NCBI GenBank assembly: GCA_013416795.1
Contig: RQSC01000029.1
Span: 450,250 to 514,249 of the forward strand
Length of the DNA: 64,000 nucleotides
Source: Prasinococcaceae sp. CCMP 1430
Taxonomy: Eukaryota > Plantae > Prasinodermophyta
Reading direction: 5' to 3'
The position numbers and the translations under genes were made by a program. This document shows, piece after piece, positions 18,177 through 26,612 of the stretch. Each line of letters starts with the position of its first letter. The stretch's first letter is position 1. Below the pieces are notes generated by a model. It was not told where the DNA came from, ran no database searches, and saw only the letters and a program-made list of their open reading frames with translations.

Positions 18177-21100
18177 TCACGCGCCTACTCGGGCCTTCTC
18201 GCGCATCGCATCCTCGGCCTCGGCGACCTTCGTCGCCAGCTCGTCCAGGCGCGCGTAGCGCTCGGTGCCGCCGAAGGCTTCCTTGCCCTGTTTGACTACG
18301 CCGCGCAGCTGCATGCGCACCGAGGCGAGGTCCTTCGCAGCCTGGGCGCAGCTGTAGCCGATTGCGGCAGCGCCCTCCTCGGCCGGCGGTGGCTCTGGCG
18401 TCGCCTCCTGCGCGGCGTTGAGGCGGATGACGGCGAGGTCGCAGCACGCGGCCGCGAGCTGCTCGAACGCATTGCCATCGGAGCGCCACTTCGTGCCGGC
18501 CTGCAGCGCCCGCAAGCGGCGCATGGTGAATTCGGTAGCGCCCGCGTGGTCGCCGCCGGTGAGGCGCAGGCGCGCCTGCAGCGACCACACCGCGCCCATC
18601 AGCCCCGTCGACGAGGCGCTCTCGTCCGCGTCGCCGCGGCGCGCGAGCGGCGTGCCATCCGCCTTGTACATTTCGCGCCCGTCGGGCGACGCCTTGGAGG
18701 CGTCCGCGAGTGCCGCCTGAACATCAGCCACCAGCCGCCCCATCTCGCGCTCCGTGTACGTCGGCAGAGGCTCCTTGGCAAAGGCAGCCTCCGCCGCCAT
18801 GCCGACGATGTCCTCGCCTCCGTAAGCCGAGTCGTCGGCGTCGACGTCGGCCTCTTCCTCCCCGGCTGCGTTGAGGCCGATGTCGTCGAGCGACGCCATC
18901 AGGGCTTCCTCAGCAGCGCCCTCGCGCGCCTCGCGCCTGGCCGCCTCGCGCGCGGCGCGCGCCGCCGCCTCTGGACCGCCGGTGACGGCCTCGGGGTCGC
19001 GCACCACGCGCTCCACCTCGGCCACGCATGCTGCCAGTGCGCGAATGTTGACACGCGCTCCCTTTGTAAGCTCCATCAGCCGACGAGCGGCGTTTGCTGC
19101 TTGTCTGAAGCGCCGCACTTCGGTGGCCACCGTCGCCAGGTTGTCCCACGCGTGCCAACTGTGCTCGCGCACGCGTACGCACTCGGACAGCGCGACGTGC
19201 GCCGCGCGCGTGCGCTTGGCCTTCATGTGCAGTGCCGCTAGATTGTTCCACGCCTCACCCGCGCGCATCTCGAGTTGCACCGTGCGCGAGAAGGCGCGCG
19301 CGGCCTCCTCGTCGCGCTCAAGCTTGAGCGCCGCATAGCCGAGAGCAAACCAGCCGTTGGTGTAGAGCGTGCTCGCACGCTGCGCGTCACGCCAGTGCGC
19401 AAGGGCCGCCTCGTGGTCCTCGCGAGCGGCCGCCCGCCTGGCAAGCGCACGCTTTGCACCGGCGAACTTGCCGCCTGACACCTCCCACGAGTGCTCCATG
19501 AGCGCCTCATTGCCTTCGAGCTCACCGAGAACCAGCCAGGCGCGCGCATCGCCCTCGTCCACCGCCAGCCGCTTGCGTACCGCGGCAACCGCCGCCGGGA
19601 CCTTGTCCAGCGCCTTGTAACACGCCGCCAGCGATTCCCACACCTCGAGAGCCTCCAGCAGCGGCAGCGCCGAGCCTACCATTCCATTGGCCACCAGCTG
19701 CTCGGCGAGTTCTTTGCGCACCCCGCCAGCGAGCGGCATAGGCGTTGCGAAGACGCCGAGCGTACGGGACGCACTCAGCGATGCAAACCTGTCCGCCTCC
19801 GTCGCGGCCGAGGCGGCGCGCAGCGCTGCGGCTGCAGCAGGCGCCTCGCCGATGGCGAGACGCTGCGAGCGCACCAGGGCGGTGATGCGCGCAAGTGCAC
19901 GCGAGCGCGTGCGCGTACGCGTGCGCTCGTGGCGCGCCTGTTCCAGAGCCGCAGCAAGCGCCACCGCGAACGGCGCAGCGGGCTGCGCGGCGACACAGTC
20001 GACGTATGGCGCGGCCTCCCATGGCGAAAGCTCATCCTCCGTTCGGCACTTGCGCAAGACGTGCGCCTGTGCCATAACGAGGCACAGTTCCACGCTTGAC
20101 ATCGCGGGCGGGGCAGCCTGCACCATGTGCGAAGCCGAGTAGAACGTGCGCGTGGTGTAAGGCAGTGCATTTGGCCCGTGTGGCAGCGCCAACAACCGTC
20201 AGCATCGACGCGCGCGCAGCATGCTCTCTTTCTCTTTCTCTTCGGCGCGTGTGCGCGAGTGGGGGAATCAGACAGCTGCGCACTCTCATCGCGAGAGAGG
20301 ATCGACGCAGGTGGCTCGATTTGACACGCGGGCCACCCGCGAAGCGCTCGATTGTGTGCGGGGCTTAATCCGCTTGCGCAATGTGTCATCATATCCCCTC
20401 CACAGCCAGCGCCGGCGCGCGCGGGCTGGCGCGCGCACCTCTGTCTGCCCCTCGACCTCCACGAGTCTGGGCCTCTCGAGAATGTCACAATTCGCCGCAT
20501 CGTCTATGACCCCCTGCTCCTCCGCACGCTCGACCTCGCCGCGAGCCGCGGCGGCCGCCTCGCCGAGCGCCGCGTCGGCACCAGGCGCGCCGGCCTCGCC
20601 CGCCATAGCCGCGCGTTCGGCCGCCTCGGCAGCAGCCGCTGCCTCGTCCTCGGCTGCGCGCGCACCCACGCGCGCTACACGCGCGACAAGCTGCGCCTTT
20701 GGGTCCTGCTGGTGCCGCGTGCGGTAGCCCATCGCGCCGACAACGCCGACGCGCACGCCTAGCAACTGCTCCGCAGCTTCGAGCTTGCGTGCGGCTGCCG
20801 CCGGCCGCGAGTAGTACGCGTCCGCCAGCGCGTCCTCCAGCTCGATCGCCGCTCGCGCGGCGCGAGGCAACCAGATCTGGCCATCGCCCTCGCCGGCGCC
20901 CTGGTCGCCGCCTCCGAGCAGAGCGCGCGCGGCGCCGAAGCGCGCGCGGCACTCGTCGCGCAGCTCGCGTGCGGCGCCCGTGAGTGCGCGCTGGTGCATG
21001 AGCAGCGCACGCGCGAGCCACCAATGGGCGGTGTCGAGTCGGTCCTGCCGAAGGCACGCGTCGTTGCTGGTGCCCTCTGCAGCTGCGCTGTCCCCGGCCC

Positions 21101-21641
21101 CATCCTCGGGCTTTGGCGCGGGGAGCGGCCCAGCGGCCACGCGCAGCAGCGCCTCGGCCAGAAGCAGATACTGCGCCGCACCGCACGCGAACGCCGGCTG
21201 CTCACCGCCGCGGGCCATCGCCCGCTGCGCCGCGCGGCACCATGGGCCGCGCTCTCGCGCGCTCGCGCGCGCGCCCACCGCTGAGCTCCCATCCTCGCCT
21301 TCGCCCTCGTCGCTATCGCTCATTCCCATGTCTCCCATGCCGTCATCGAGCGCGTCGAGTGCATCCAAAACGCCACCCGCCTCATCCGCCTCGTCCGCGG
21401 CGGCGCCAGCGCCGGCAGTGGCGCCACCCTCGGCCGCGACCGCGGTCGTAGCTGCCCCGCTGAAGACCGCCTCGACAATGTTGTCCTCCAACGGCGGCTC
21501 GGGCCCGCAGACGTTGCACTGTGCGAAGACCATGAGCGCGGCCACGCCGGCGACGAGGGCATCGGCGCGCTGTGCTGCGGTGCGCGGCGCCGCGCTGCGC
21601 GCAGGGGCGCGCCCAGCAGCGGGCCGACGCCGCCCCACCAT
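18177..21641 (-). CDS. TTC27: TTC27/Emw1-like TPR protein; intron 20118-20438
   Basis: FAQCNVCGP, GAMGYRTRHQQ..QLV and a TPR array (WFALGYAA, AWNNLAALHM, WDNLATVA). Confidence 0.75.
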
Positions 21642-21993: not shown

Positions 21994-24534
21994 ATGGCGA
22001 TGGCGCCGCCGACGCCTGCGGTGCCACAGTCAACCGTAGATAGGGCGGCCCGGCGCGCGGCGGAGGCTTTCGGCCTCGCCGGCGACGCCGGCGGGGGGCT
22101 GGTGGGTGCGCACACATGCAAGCTGCGCTCCGTTGATGACGCGGCGGCGGCGGTGGCAGCTGCGGCGGACGGCAGAGGCGCGCTCGCGAAGCAATCAATC
22201 TCCGGGGGACTGCTGAGCGCGGGCAAGCTGTATGTGTTCGCGGGGGGGCACCTCTGCTACAAGGGAGGGCTCGGAAGTTCCACGCGCACAGTGATCGCTG
22301 TCGCCGACCTGGAGGACGTGCTTCTGGACGACGAGTGCAACGACATGATGCTCGTCGCCGCGGGCGTGTGCTACGCGCTGCACTTCTCGCCGCCGGGTGG
22401 TAGGGCGCGCCGCGACTCCGCGCGCCGCAGCGTCATGGCAGTGTGGAGCGCGCAACTGGCGAGCGTGAGGAGCAGGAGGCAGAGCGACGCGGACCCAGAG
22501 GCCGCCGCGACTGCCGTCAGAAACGTGGCTGCCGAGCTCACTGAGGTCGCCAGCGCGCTCAGCGACGACAGCAGGGGTAACAGAGGGGCCGCGCAGCAGC
22601 CCAGCCCCGCTGAGGCCTGCGGCGGCACTGACGGTGGCGGCAGCGGAAGCAACGGCGTGAGCGAGACAGCCGCGAGGGGCGGCCATGTTGGCGACTCCCC
22701 AAACACCCCGCGCCGAGCCAACGGCGCGGGCGGCACAGCCAGGGAGAGTGGGCACGTGGGTGACCTCCCGAACAGCCCGCGCACCTCTCGCACGCCTGAG
22801 GCGGGGGGCACACCGCGCAAGGAGTTCCACCACGCCCGCGTGCCCTCGAATCTCAGCGCACTGACGCTGGAGTCGATGGATGACTTCCGCATGAGCGTCT
22901 CGTCGATGCCATTGGATCGCAAGAGCACCTGCGGGTCTGATGCCGGAGATGCTACGGGCGCAGGCGGTGGCGAGGACGCGACTAGGGAGGGCGAGGGTGC
23001 TGTCGCCAACGGCGAGGAACGAACGGGGCGGGGAGGGGAGGAGCGCGAGCTCCCGGTGCAGCGATCCGAAGAGGCTGAGCAGCCAAGCCTGTACGCCCAG
23101 AACGACGACATTGACGCGAGCGACGAGGAGGTGGATCCGCGCGTCGGCGAGGCGCTTGAAGCGCTTAATGAGGCCACCGACGAGGTGAATCGGCTCGAGA
23201 ATGATCTGAGCGGCGCGCGTCGCTCGTACGCGCGCGTCAAGCGCGCGGGCGCCTCGCGCGTCAACGACCTGGTCTCCAAGCTCGAGCCCCATATCCGAGC
23301 GGCGGCACCATACTACAACGCGCTTGAGCTGGTGCGTGAGCGGCGAGAGCGAGCTGCGAAGGCCGCCACACGGTTCACCGATGCCCTTGCTGCACATGAG
23401 GAGGCTCGTGCCGAGCTGCACAAGGTCGAGAGCGCGCTCGAATCGGGCGCGGCGTTCGACCCGTACATGCAAGACCGAATGGGCCGCTGCGGCGAGGCTG
23501 TCACACGTTCTGCAGCTGCTCGCGAAGTCGCGGACGTCGACCACGTGCGCGCCGCGGACGAATGCGAGGCCGCGCTCGCGCAATTGGACGCCTTCTCGAG
23601 ACGTGTCAAAAAGCATGCGCTGCTCGCGAAGCCCTACTTCGATGCCCGCGCTGCCGTCGAGGTCGAGTGCGCCAATGGGCTCAAGCATTGCGAAGGTCTC
23701 GCCGAGCAGGTTGAAGCAGCGAAGGCGCGCGTGGGCGACGCGCTGCAGATGCTCGACACCATCAGCCGGGATGTGCATGCAAAGCGCAGCGGAGAGATCT
23801 TGGAGGTGCCAGGCGGCGCACAGAACGGCGACGGCGATGGCAGCTCCAACGGCAAGGACGTGATGTGTGAGGCCGAGGCAGCGCTGGAGCGTTACAAGAT
23901 CCTCACGCTGCCGGTGATTGAGAGGCGCAAGAGTATCATTGCCGCAGCTAAAGAGGCGGTTGCGCTCGTGGCAGCAGCAGATGCAGAGGACGACGCCGAC
24001 CTGCCCCCAATCGTGAGCATCGAGCAAATGCTTGGAAAGAAGCTGAGCTTGGTCGTCGAGGAAACAGGCGACTTGGAAACGCCTGACACGCCCGCTAGCG
24101 CTGGTAGCGACCACATTGGGGCCGAGCGGACGCTGGCCACCGAGGATGGCGCGGGTGTGCCCTCGAAGACGAGCGAGGACCAAATAGCATCGAGTGCAGA
24201 CATGGCAGCCGAGGCAGACGAGGATGAAGCGGATGAAGGCGATTTACCGGAGCAAACGACGGGAGCAGACGCCAGCTCGGGGGTGTTGACGGAAAGAGAA
24301 GCCGCCGATACCGATGACGTCTCCAAGATTGACTTCGCGGAGCCGGCGACCTCGCCGGTGAGCGAAGAGCACGATGCTGCTGAGACTTGCGAAGGCACCG
24401 ATACGGGGGGCGCGATGGAGCCCGTGGCCAACAGTACCAACGACAGCGCAGATGCCACAGAGGCGATGGAGGAGACCGAGGACACGGCAGAGACTGCTGC
24501 CAACGCTGTTGAAGGGACCCCGCAAGCGCCCTGA
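21994..24534 (+). CDS. GRAM/PH-like domain plus SH3BP5 (Rab11-GEF-type) coiled-coil domain protein
   Basis: N-terminal GKLYVFAGGHLCYKG...TRTVIAVADLEDV (GRAM-like). Region 23125-23787 reads EEVDPRVGEALEALNEATDEVNRLE...APYY...KPYFD...LDTISRDVHAKR, paralleling SH3BP5. Confidence 0.75.
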   Translation: MAMAPPTPAVPQSTVDRAARRAAEAFGLAGDAGGGLVGAHTCKLRSVDDAAAAVAAAADGRGALAKQSISGGLLSAGKLYVFAGGHLCYKGGLGSSTRTVIAVADLEDVLLDDECNDMMLVAAGVCYALHFSPPGGRARRDSARRSVMAVWSAQLASVRSRRQSDADPEAAATAVRNVAAELTEVASALSDDSRGNRGAAQQPSPAEACGGTDGGGSGSNGVSETAARGGHVGDSPNTPRRANGAGGTARESGHVGDLPNSPRTSRTPEAGGTPRKEFHHARVPSNLSALTLESMDDFRMSVSSMPLDRKSTCGSDAGDATGAGGGEDATREGEGAVANGEERTGRGGEERELPVQRSEEAEQPSLYAQNDDIDASDEEVDPRVGEALEALNEATDEVNRLENDLSGARRSYARVKRAGASRVNDLVSKLEPHIRAAAPYYNALELVRERRERAAKAATRFTDALAAHEEARAELHKVESALESGAAFDPYMQDRMGRCGEAVTRSAAAREVADVDHVRAADECEAALAQLDAFSRRVKKHALLAKPYFDARAAVEVECANGLKHCEGLAEQVEAAKARVGDALQMLDTISRDVHAKRSGEILEVPGGAQNGDGDGSSNGKDVMCEAEAALERYKILTLPVIERRKSIIAAAKEAVALVAAADAEDDADLPPIVSIEQMLGKKLSLVVEETGDLETPDTPASAGSDHIGAERTLATEDGAGVPSKTSEDQIASSADMAAEADEDEADEGDLPEQTTGADASSGVLTEREAADTDDVSKIDFAEPATSPVSEEHDAAETCEGTDTGGAMEPVANSTNDSADATEAMEETEDTAETAANAVEGTPQAP

Positions 24535-24781
24535 GCAAGCTTCAGCTCCGGTGGGGAATGAATTGAGCCGGGGCAGCACGGGCACCGCCGCGTGCCTACT
24601 GCTGTGCGGGGTGGACGCGAGGCGGGCACGGCATCTGGCGAAGGCGTGGATTGCAGCGAGTGGTGAGGGGGATAATAGATAATAGTCGGCGCGCGCCCCA
24701 CCACCCGAGCATGCACTTGCCCTGCGCTGGGGCCGCTCGCAGCGCTCTTGAGACCAGTGTGCACAGAACCTCATTAATAGC

Positions 24782-26117
24782 CTACAGTTCGTACGCGTCG
24801 GATTTCACCGCCAGCCGCTGCATGGCGAGCTCCGCCTTGACGCGCCGAGCGGTGTCGGTGGCGACGCCGACCAAAATGAGCACGGACGTACCCGCGAATC
24901 CGCGGAAGGCGGTGAGATTGGTCGCCTGCTCCACTGCCGAGGGCGCCACGGCGAGCGCACCGAGGAAGATGCTCCCCAGCACCGACAGGTTGCCGAGCAT
25001 ATCCGAGAGGTAGTTGGCAGTCTGCTTGCCCGGGCGCACTCCTGCGATGGACGCGCCACCGCGCTTGAGCTGCTCGGACACGTCCTTGGGGTCGAGCTGC
25101 AGGAAAGTGTAGAAGTAGTTGAAGAAGACGATGAGGCCCACGTTGATAGGCACGTAATACGCGCCGCCTGGAAAGAGGCTCTGACCGAGCGCGGCGAGCG
25201 CCTCCGAGCCCGTAAAGCGTGCGAGCGTCGAGGGCAGCGCGAGCACGCTCGAGCTGAAGATGACGGGCATCACGCCAGTGGAGTTCACCTTGAAGGGGAG
25301 GTAAGAGGATGAGTCGAGCCCGCGCGCGCGCGCCTTGTAGCGCGAGGCGTAATTAATTGGGATCTTGCGCTCGGCCTCCTGCACGTAGATGATGCCGACC
25401 GTGGAGGCCAAGAACGCAGCGAAGAACAGCGAAAGCGCCTCAGGGGTCACGCCCTCGCCCCCCGACGCAATGGTCGCCCCGATGGACGCGGGCAGCGAGC
25501 TCAGGATGTTGGTAAAGATGAGCAGCGACGTGCCGTTGCCCAGCTTCAGCTCGGAGATCTTCTCGCCGATGTACATGAGCACCATCGCGCCCGCTACCAA
25601 CGTGAGGCTCGAGCCCGCGAGGTACGTGAGGTCGAAGTCGTACACGAATGGCCGCACATACAGCACCTGCCCCACCGCCTGCACGCTGGCGAACGCCAGC
25701 GCGCCGTAGCGCATGTACTGATTGAATTGGCGGCGGCCGGCCTCGCCCTCCTCGCGCTGCAGCTTCTTGAGCTCCGGGGAGAAGGAGGCGAGCAGCTGAA
25801 AGACAATTGAGCTGTTGATGTACGGGATGATGCCGAGCGAGAACACGCCGAGCTTAGAGATGCCGCCGCCCGCCAAGTTGTCCACGTACGCCAGCAGGCC
25901 GTTGTTGCCGATGGCCGCCTCGAACGCCGCGCGGTCGACGCCTGGCAGCGGGATGTACACACCCACGCGCGAAACGACGAGAAGGCCGAGCAGCGCGGCG
26001 AGCTTGCCCGGAAGATCCCCCTGCAGGAAGAGCTCCAGCTGCGACGCCTCGGGCGGCGGAGCGCCGCCGCCGCGCCCCGACTGGGCTGCCAGCGGCGTGC
26101 CGCGCGCAGTGCGTGCC
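24782..26117 (-). CDS. SCY1: Thylakoid SecY translocase subunit; 5' end in the gap
   Basis: Motifs SRVGVYIPLPG, FSLGIIPYINSSIVFQLL, GNGTSLLIF, KVNSTGVMPVIF and GTSVLILVGV. Confidence 0.95.
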
Positions 26118-26432
26118 NNNNNNNNNNNNNNNNNNNNNNNNNNNNNNNNNNNNNNNNNNNNNNNNNNNNNNNNNNNNNNNNNNNNNNNNNNNNNNNNNNN
26201 NNNNNNNNNNNNNNNNNNNNNNNNNNNNNNNNNNNNNNNNNNNNNNNNNNNNNNNNNNNNNCGCGGATGGGCGCGCGCCGCGCCCGCGCGCGGCCGCCGC
26301 GCGCGCGCCCGAAACCCTACCGGATCCCTACCGAATCGCGATCGCGATGGCAATCGGCCGGCCGGCCGGTGCTCTCGCACCCATCCATCGCATGCCGTCG
26401 ACGTGAAAGAAGGGAGCGGTCCTCCCACCCAC

Positions 26433-26528
26433 CCGACCGACCGAGCCCTGCCGGACACTCCACCCTGCCGGCACCCCGACTGACTGACGGTCGGTCGGAA
26501 GTTTGCTCCGCCCACCGCTTCAGTCAGT
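26433..26528. repeat. Two interleaved inverted repeats
   Basis: CCGACCGACCG (26433-43) pairs with CGGTCGGTCGG (26488-98); ACTGACTGA (26479-87) pairs with TCAGTCAGT (26520-28). Confidence 0.7.
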
Positions 26529-26612
26529 ACGACCGATTGCGGCACGCCAATTGGATGAGGGCGCGGCTGCGCATGGATGCTTCGAGAGTGGATCGAGGGC
26601 CGCATGCGACCG

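Follow-up and report, generated by a model that had tools for sequence, protein, structure and literature searches.

Does a green alga carry an SH3BP5-type Rab11 activator and, if so, what has been joined to it? The question is raised by a 64,000-nucleotide stretch of DNA from Prasinococcaceae sp. CCMP 1430 (contig RQSC01000029.1 of assembly GCA_013416795.1, positions 450,250 to 514,249 of the forward strand; hereafter the window), in which a single intronless open reading frame (ORF) of 846 amino acids plus stop occupies positions 21994..24534 of the + strand, with its ATG at 21994 and its stop codon ending at 24534. SH3BP5 has been described as a metazoan-specific Rab11 guanine nucleotide exchange factor (GEF), or as occurring only in metazoans (PMC5800803, PMC6138693, PMC7719173), and the SH3BP5 family as conserved among metazoans (PMC5154356). 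A sequence-only reading of the locus had proposed a fusion of an SH3BP5-type GEF domain with a GRAM domain. We consider it probable, judging from the encoded sequence, that the protein is a Rab11/RabA exchange factor belonging to a green-algal branch of the SH3BP5 family and bearing an added domain with a targeting or regulatory role.

The length of the ORF is by itself little proof of a gene, because long ORFs arise by chance in such GC-rich DNA (approximately 62-76% GC in the gene region); one of 662 amino acids runs on the opposite strand. That antisense ORF, at window positions 22195-24183 (-), most likely reflects the high GC content and is not taken to be a gene. The assignment of 21994-24534 as a real gene in the + frame is based on codon-position composition, on allelic changes, and on conservation in a relative. 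GC content per codon position keeps one phase through the entire ORF (third positions, 0.66-0.87; second positions, 0.41-0.65), while the flanks show no phase. P0001, a wild allele recovered in Tara Oceans metagenomes, is 98% identical to the window gene, with 38 base differences: 14 synonymous and 6 nonsynonymous changes across amino acids 1-605, and 5 synonymous and 13 nonsynonymous changes from amino acid 606 onward. Within the linker, the corresponding counts are 6 and 2. Finally, P0002, from another marine lineage at a greater distance (52% identity to the window protein), has many insertions and deletions, yet its N-terminal block, SH3BP5 domain, and two C-terminal motifs, along with a motif in the linker, all remain in a single frame.

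The SH3BP5 Rab11-GEF domain spans amino acids 378-601 (23125..23796, +) and consists of four helical segments. Pfam family PF05276 (SH3BP5) matches this region over profile positions 1-226 of 231 with an E value of 2.3e-46 and 158.9 bits (cutoff, 25), and the crystal chains of human SH3BP5, 6ixv and 6djl, match at E values of 1e-20 and 7e-20, respectively. The motifs EEVDPRVGEALEALNEATDEVNRLE, PYY, KPYF, and LQMLDTISRDVHAKR are all present, with the hinge motifs PYY at amino acids 439-441 and KPYF at amino acids 546-549 (PYW and KPYF in the human protein). The sequence-only reading had listed these motifs correctly apart from the last, which reads IS..VH.KR rather than IS..IH.RR. Agreement of this degree greatly exceeds what chance would produce. 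In the AlphaFold2 model, the domain has a predicted local distance difference test score (pLDDT) of about 80-96, with helices at about 90, and a Foldseek search of the Protein Data Bank (PDB) with this model returned SH3BP5 structures as all 11 of its best matches (E values of 2e-9 to 4e-8).

The residues responsible for exchange in human SH3BP5 are L49, L52, N53, N60, Y243, L247, S254, and H258 (Goto-Ito et al., PMC6419104), and the substitutions LNQ52AAA and LE250AK abolish activity (Jenkins et al., PMC6138693). These positions were mapped onto the window protein with both HMMER and MAFFT alignments. Seven of the eight exchange-critical residues are identical, namely, L388, L391, N392, and N399 (human L49, L52, N53, and N60) and L584, S591, and H595 (human L247, S254, and H258); the eighth, Y243, corresponds to V580, a change that keeps the position hydrophobic. 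Among nearby positions, L250 is identical (L587), and the replacements of E251 by D588 and of I257 by V594 are conservative. Within LNQ52, the LN pair is thus retained, as is the leucine of LE250. By these profile matches and alignments, the region is a true SH3BP5-family domain with conserved Rab11-contact residues, encoded in a green alga, and the earlier proposal of such a domain is supported. Rab11/RabA exchange activity is to be expected mainly because this interface has been kept across a very deep divergence.

Three points count against that expectation. At the residue that differs, Y243, substitution by alanine strongly impairs human SH3BP5. The AlphaFold2 model joins alpha3 and alpha4 into a single straight helix rather than a V shape, giving a TM score of about 0.51 and a root mean square deviation of 15 to 20 Å against the crystal structures. 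Exchange activity in nonanimal members of the family is also a prediction from sequence. A protein that has kept the SH3BP5 fold and no longer acts on Rab11, serving instead as an activator of another Rab or as a coiled-coil scaffold or adaptor, is therefore an explanation to be weighed, since animal SH3BP5/SAB also binds BTK and JNK. Such a change of role would fit the replacement of Y243 by V580, the long branch of the window protein (1.6 changes per column to its pair, with a residue composition unlike that of the other sequences), and the many lineage-specific motifs that have no assigned role. We regard it as unlikely: identity at seven of the eight exchange-critical residues and in the hinge after so deep a divergence points to selection for the same interface, and valine at the Y243 position is also found in the Prasinococcus protein and in those of the holozoan protists Capsaspora, Pigoraptor, and Syssomonas, which branch with the animal Rab11 GEFs.

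Whether the domain is at home in green algae was addressed through its relatives. A profile of amino acids 60-691 was searched against 1.84 billion representative proteins and gave 389 matches at E values up to 0.001, and the best 150 of the 389 all match via the SH3BP5 domain. Word-index protein searches with the whole protein or the domain region returned only the two close orthologues, more distant kin being beyond the reach of that method. Source names were looked up for 30 representatives. Those from animals include Hydra and a tardigrade, and several other matches look vertebrate by sequence. Choanoflagellates are represented by Monosiga and two Salpingoeca species, and other unicellular holozoans by Capsaspora, Pigoraptor, Syssomonas, Chromosphaera, and one EukProt entry prefixed "Clim," which we take to be Corallochytrium. 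The named green algal members are from Prasinococcus capsulatus and Cymbomonas tetramitiformis (KAK3234736, annotated as a hypothetical protein), and further members lie on compact, gene-dense environmental contigs, one of which carries a light-harvesting-protein gene. All 10 green-type proteins tested gave a full PF05276 match.

A maximum-likelihood tree of 47 domains (IQ-TREE) placed 11 green-type sequences in one clade, with support of 99/97, outside all holozoan sequences; all other sequences in the tree are holozoan and branch in agreement with species relationships, choanoflagellates standing beside animals at 98/97. The tree is unrooted, the window branch is long, and a green algal origin is established for only 3 of the 11 green-type members (the window protein itself and two others through their source names). 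A separate, well-supported green-type clade argues against recent transfer from animals, which this sequence tree excludes; the tree does not discriminate between long vertical inheritance accompanied by numerous losses and a transfer of early date. Judged from these sequences, the SH3BP5 family is not restricted to animals, and its domain is already spread among prasinophyte-type algae. The description of the family as known from animals, on which the earlier reading of the locus had relied, is thus too narrow, given named homologues in Capsaspora, Monosiga, Salpingoeca, Pigoraptor, Syssomonas, Chromosphaera, Prasinococcus, and Cymbomonas.

The same results bear on the idea that the gene is a contaminant or was recently acquired from an animal or other holozoan. 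The published view of the family as metazoan-specific, cited above, speaks for it. We give it almost no credence: the GC content of the gene is that of its surroundings, a SecY gene adjoins it in the window, and wild Tara contigs carry a gene of similar length, on the opposite strand, at the position of this SecY neighbor. Moreover, the protein groups with those of Prasinococcus, Cymbomonas, and the compact, picoalga-like contigs (99/97), outside all holozoans.

Two further observations concern the green-type clade. The green-type SH3BP5 genes at L006:1660-8759 and L008:6001-13212 both lie near CNNM/CorC and DnaJ genes on intron-poor contigs, which suggests conserved gene order in picoalga-like genomes; the L008 contig also carries a chlorophyll a/b-binding protein gene. 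In addition, a partial metagenome protein of 277 amino acids from the Joint Genome Institute (JGI) collection (P0151) has a WW domain (PF00397, E value of 5e-8) directly before its GEF domain. By sequence, this WW domain is a second, different N-terminal addition within the green-type clade.

What has been joined to the GEF domain of the window protein is a conserved N-terminal domain at about amino acids 25-166 (22066..22491, +), which we assign, with low confidence and largely from modeling, as PH-like and more particularly GRAM-like on the basis of conservation, AlphaFold2 models, and structural and feature neighbors; membership in the GRAM family is unproven. The domain comprises an FGL...LVGAHTCKL segment, an alanine-rich loop, GKLYVFAGGHLCYKGG, further strands, and a long basic C-terminal helix. 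The block at amino acids 73-164 is conserved in P0002. In the P0002 species, the sequence MAASGERAALRAAEGFGLSGGGGGLVGAHACTLG... lies upstream in frame and matches window amino acids 14-44; this first exon was missed by the gene caller, and a GT-AG intron of approximately 462 bases (within L001:56-641; donor AG|GTGCGT) could join it to the rest of the gene. Where the P0002 species has this intron, the window alga has the in-frame alanine-rich loop (amino acids 46-72). Since exon 1 of the P0002 species matches the first strand, the whole N-terminal domain is conserved in both lineages.

The PH-like assignment draws on several kinds of comparison. The same topology emerged from two separate AlphaFold2 runs: six strands and then the long basic C-terminal helix. 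The structural neighbors listed by Foldseek and VIA are nearly all PH-superfold domains, among them the GRAM-type PH-like domain of Lam6 (5yqr; Foldseek rank 2, E value of 0.014; VIA Z score of 7.5), the CCM2 PTB domain (Z score of 8.0), MTMR2 (Z score of 6.3), BBS5, and TFIIH p62. All Foldseek E values exceed 0.01, and VIA Z scores of 6 to 8 fall in a range common for unrelated models, such that these matches are suggestive of the fold and not proof of it. In three runs of a protein-language-model feature search, covering two species, GRAM clusters ranked first, with scores of 0.87-0.88 (bar, 0.9), and one clan accounted for 9 to 10 of the top ten named matches. The domain also carries a G-K-L-Y-V-F...L-C-Y pattern, which is typical of GRAM-like domains.

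Alternatively, the N-terminal region could adopt another small fold or be mostly disordered, with the PH-like picture arising as an artifact of a shallow alignment. The model was built from only three sequences and has a mean pLDDT of 54 (59-71 in the core). No Pfam family, GRAM (PF02893) included, matched at E values up to 10 for amino acids 1-200, amino acids 14-170, or the two orthologues, and a sequence-profile search of the PDB with the N-terminal alignment likewise gave no match at an E value of 10. Together with the structural scores and the below-bar feature scores given above, these results weigh against a PH-like domain, and we treat the artifact as a minority possibility to be taken seriously. 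The repeated topology, the near-uniform PH-superfold identity of the listed structural neighbors, the concentration of the best named feature matches in one clan, and the GRAM-typical pattern favor a PH-like domain. Of the GRAM fusion proposed earlier, the extra conserved domain stands, while its designation has to be relaxed from GRAM to PH-like or GRAM-like.

The fusion itself is rare. It was found only in the window alga (including the P0001 allele) and in the P0002 lineage. The best 150 of the 389 relatives all lack the N-terminal domain as well as the linker and C-terminal motifs, the one exception being a trace of C-terminal motif 1 in P0005, the Prasinococcus protein. A scan of JGI metagenomes with the N-terminal domain alignment yielded 600 pattern sites, none of which was confirmed.

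We also weighed whether the gene model is an artifact, in which a small PH-like gene and a neighboring SH3BP5 gene had been read as one ORF in DNA of 70% GC, where stop codons are rare. The long spurious ORF on the opposite strand shows that such frames occur here, and no RNA contig spans 22597-22670, a gap of 73 bases. Nonetheless, two genes are very improbable: the frame is kept through the linker in P0002 despite several insertions and deletions, with a conserved motif in mid-linker; third-position GC keeps its phase without a break; the linker has 6 synonymous against 2 nonsynonymous changes; and RNA-library contigs cover linker sequence to either side of the gap.

The gene is expressed. 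Contigs from two marine metatranscriptomes lie on 22689-22852, 23595-23966, and 24313-24764 with 95-99% identity, and a small, culture-type contig set (X1) covers 22098-22597 and 22670-25000 and leaves the upstream intergenic region uncovered; X1 is RNA by guess only, which, like the 73-base gap, lessens the force of this coverage. No joints were seen in the RNA-library contigs on the gene, indicating that the covered parts are free of introns, and a single transcript probably runs across the gene.

Outside the two domains, several segments distinguish this protein. The linker motif RVPSNLSALTLESMDDFRMS, at amino acids 282-301 (22837..22896, +), has hardly changed between P0002 and the window protein and sits inside an otherwise variable, low-complexity linker; a similar sequence, LSLDDFLTFR, is present in P0161. 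Directly before the SH3BP5 domain lies the green-clade motif QPSLYAQNDDI (amino acids 363-373; 23080..23112, +), which was recognized by pattern comparison. The pattern [LY]xxD[DT]D[IL] is common to all 11 green-type sequences and absent from the holozoan and animal ones. Following the domain, C-terminal motif 1 (VM..AE..LERYKILTLPVIERRKS; amino acids 623-647; 23860..23934, +) and C-terminal motif 2 (LPPIVSIEQMLGKKLSLV; amino acids 670-687; 24001..24054, +) are both conserved in P0002, and the trace of motif 1 in Prasinococcus P0005 is faint (YMILVLP, E value of 0.012). An acidic tail at amino acids 688-846 (24055..24531, +) is poorly conserved relative to P0002. In Pfam, the linker and C-terminal pieces are without a match. 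Three sites of the basophilic-kinase type are invariant between the two species: RRDS142 (22408-22419), RRQS164 (22474-22485), and RRKS647 (23923-23934). These are possible sites of phosphoregulation, flanking the PH-like helix and lying in C-terminal motif 1.

The convergent neighbor, at 24782-26605 (-), encodes the SecY translocon subunit (PF00344, E value of 1.8e-95), and a run of Ns marking an assembly gap (26118-26261) interrupts its 5' part. RNA-set contigs continue from the 3' end of the SH3BP5 gene into the SecY gene. On the upstream side, an ORF at 20286-21641 (-) encodes 451 amino acids, is alanine-rich, has no Pfam match, and carries RNA-set contigs on 21300-21569. A small GTPase gene, as a candidate Rab11 partner, was not found in the window or in the retrieved loci of relatives.

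In the mechanism that we propose, the helical domain (amino acids 378-601) would bind the GDP form of algal Rab11/RabA through helices alpha1 and alpha4, pull out switch I, and release GDP, as solved for human SH3BP5. The PH-like, GRAM-like domain would have been added at the N terminus in the lineage of the window alga and would most probably serve to position the GEF on a specific membrane, or to gate it there, through lipid or protein binding. The recruitment of animal SH3BP5 to its membrane still awaits explanation (PMC6138693, discussion), and a natural GEF with a built-in PH-like domain would provide a simple system for studying the targeting of this class of GEFs. More tentatively, one can picture SH3BP5-type GEFs as an old eukaryotic family that persisted in Holozoa and in early-diverging green algae but disappeared from land plants and from the majority of other lineages, with one copy in the lineage of the window alga having gained a GRAM-like lipid sensor to become a lipid-gated Rab11 activator, for which there is no described counterpart.

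The window gene, together with the homologues in Prasinococcus, Cymbomonas, and six unicellular holozoan groups, indicates that the family is older and wider than the literature states. With SH3BP5 homologues present in green algae, some of these algae probably have a second route of Rab11/RabA activation besides TRAPPII. No paper linking SH3BP5 to algae or holozoan protists was found in the literature searched, which left most subscription journals outside its scope. The homologues are already public as unnamed proteins, and the novelty is that they are undescribed in the searchable literature, not that they were unknown. As computational evidence, these findings offer a useful correction and a lead rather than a new kind of system.

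Among known systems, the closest in the catalytic part are the Rab11 GEFs human SH3BP5/SH3BP5L (6djl, 6ixv), Caenorhabditis elegans REI-1/2, and Drosophila Parcas, which share the same Pfam domain over its full length at approximately 26% identity. In the animal SH3BP5 proteins, a short acidic stretch immediately precedes the domain, and the tails contain BTK-, JNK-, and tankyrase-binding parts, whereas the algal protein has a 360-amino-acid N-terminal extension with the PH-like domain, its own linker and C-terminal motifs, and valine in place of Y243. The closest named green algal sequence by path in the tree is the Prasinococcus capsulatus homologue P0005 (EukProt EP00958_P004021, an MMETSP transcript). 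It shares with the window protein the SLY..DDDI motif before the domain, the change of Y243 to V, and the trace of C-terminal motif 1. However, its complete transcript ORF begins 8 residues before the SLY..DDDI motif, and the Prasinococcus protein thus lacks the N-terminal PH-like domain.

For the N-terminal domain, the nearest comparison is with GRAM-type domains (Lam6/GRAMD1, 5yqr; MTMR2, 1lw3), which it resembles in predicted strand order and C-terminal helix, in the G-K-L-Y-V-F...L-C-Y pattern, and in its nearest feature clusters. It differs from them in having no significant PF02893 match and in carrying a 26-amino-acid alanine-rich loop between the first and second strands, and lipid binding by the algal domain is hypothetical. 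In overall design, the protein recalls the PH-bearing GEFs, such as the Sec7-PH proteins cytohesin and BRAG2 and the Dbl-type DH-PH RhoGEFs, in which a catalytic exchange domain is combined with a PH-fold module for membrane placement or gating; the PH domains of BRAG2 and LARG are themselves among the structural neighbors of the algal N-terminal domain. The catalytic domains of these GEFs are unrelated to that of SH3BP5 and act on other GTPase families, and their PH domain follows the catalytic part, whereas the putative PH-like domain of the algal protein precedes it.

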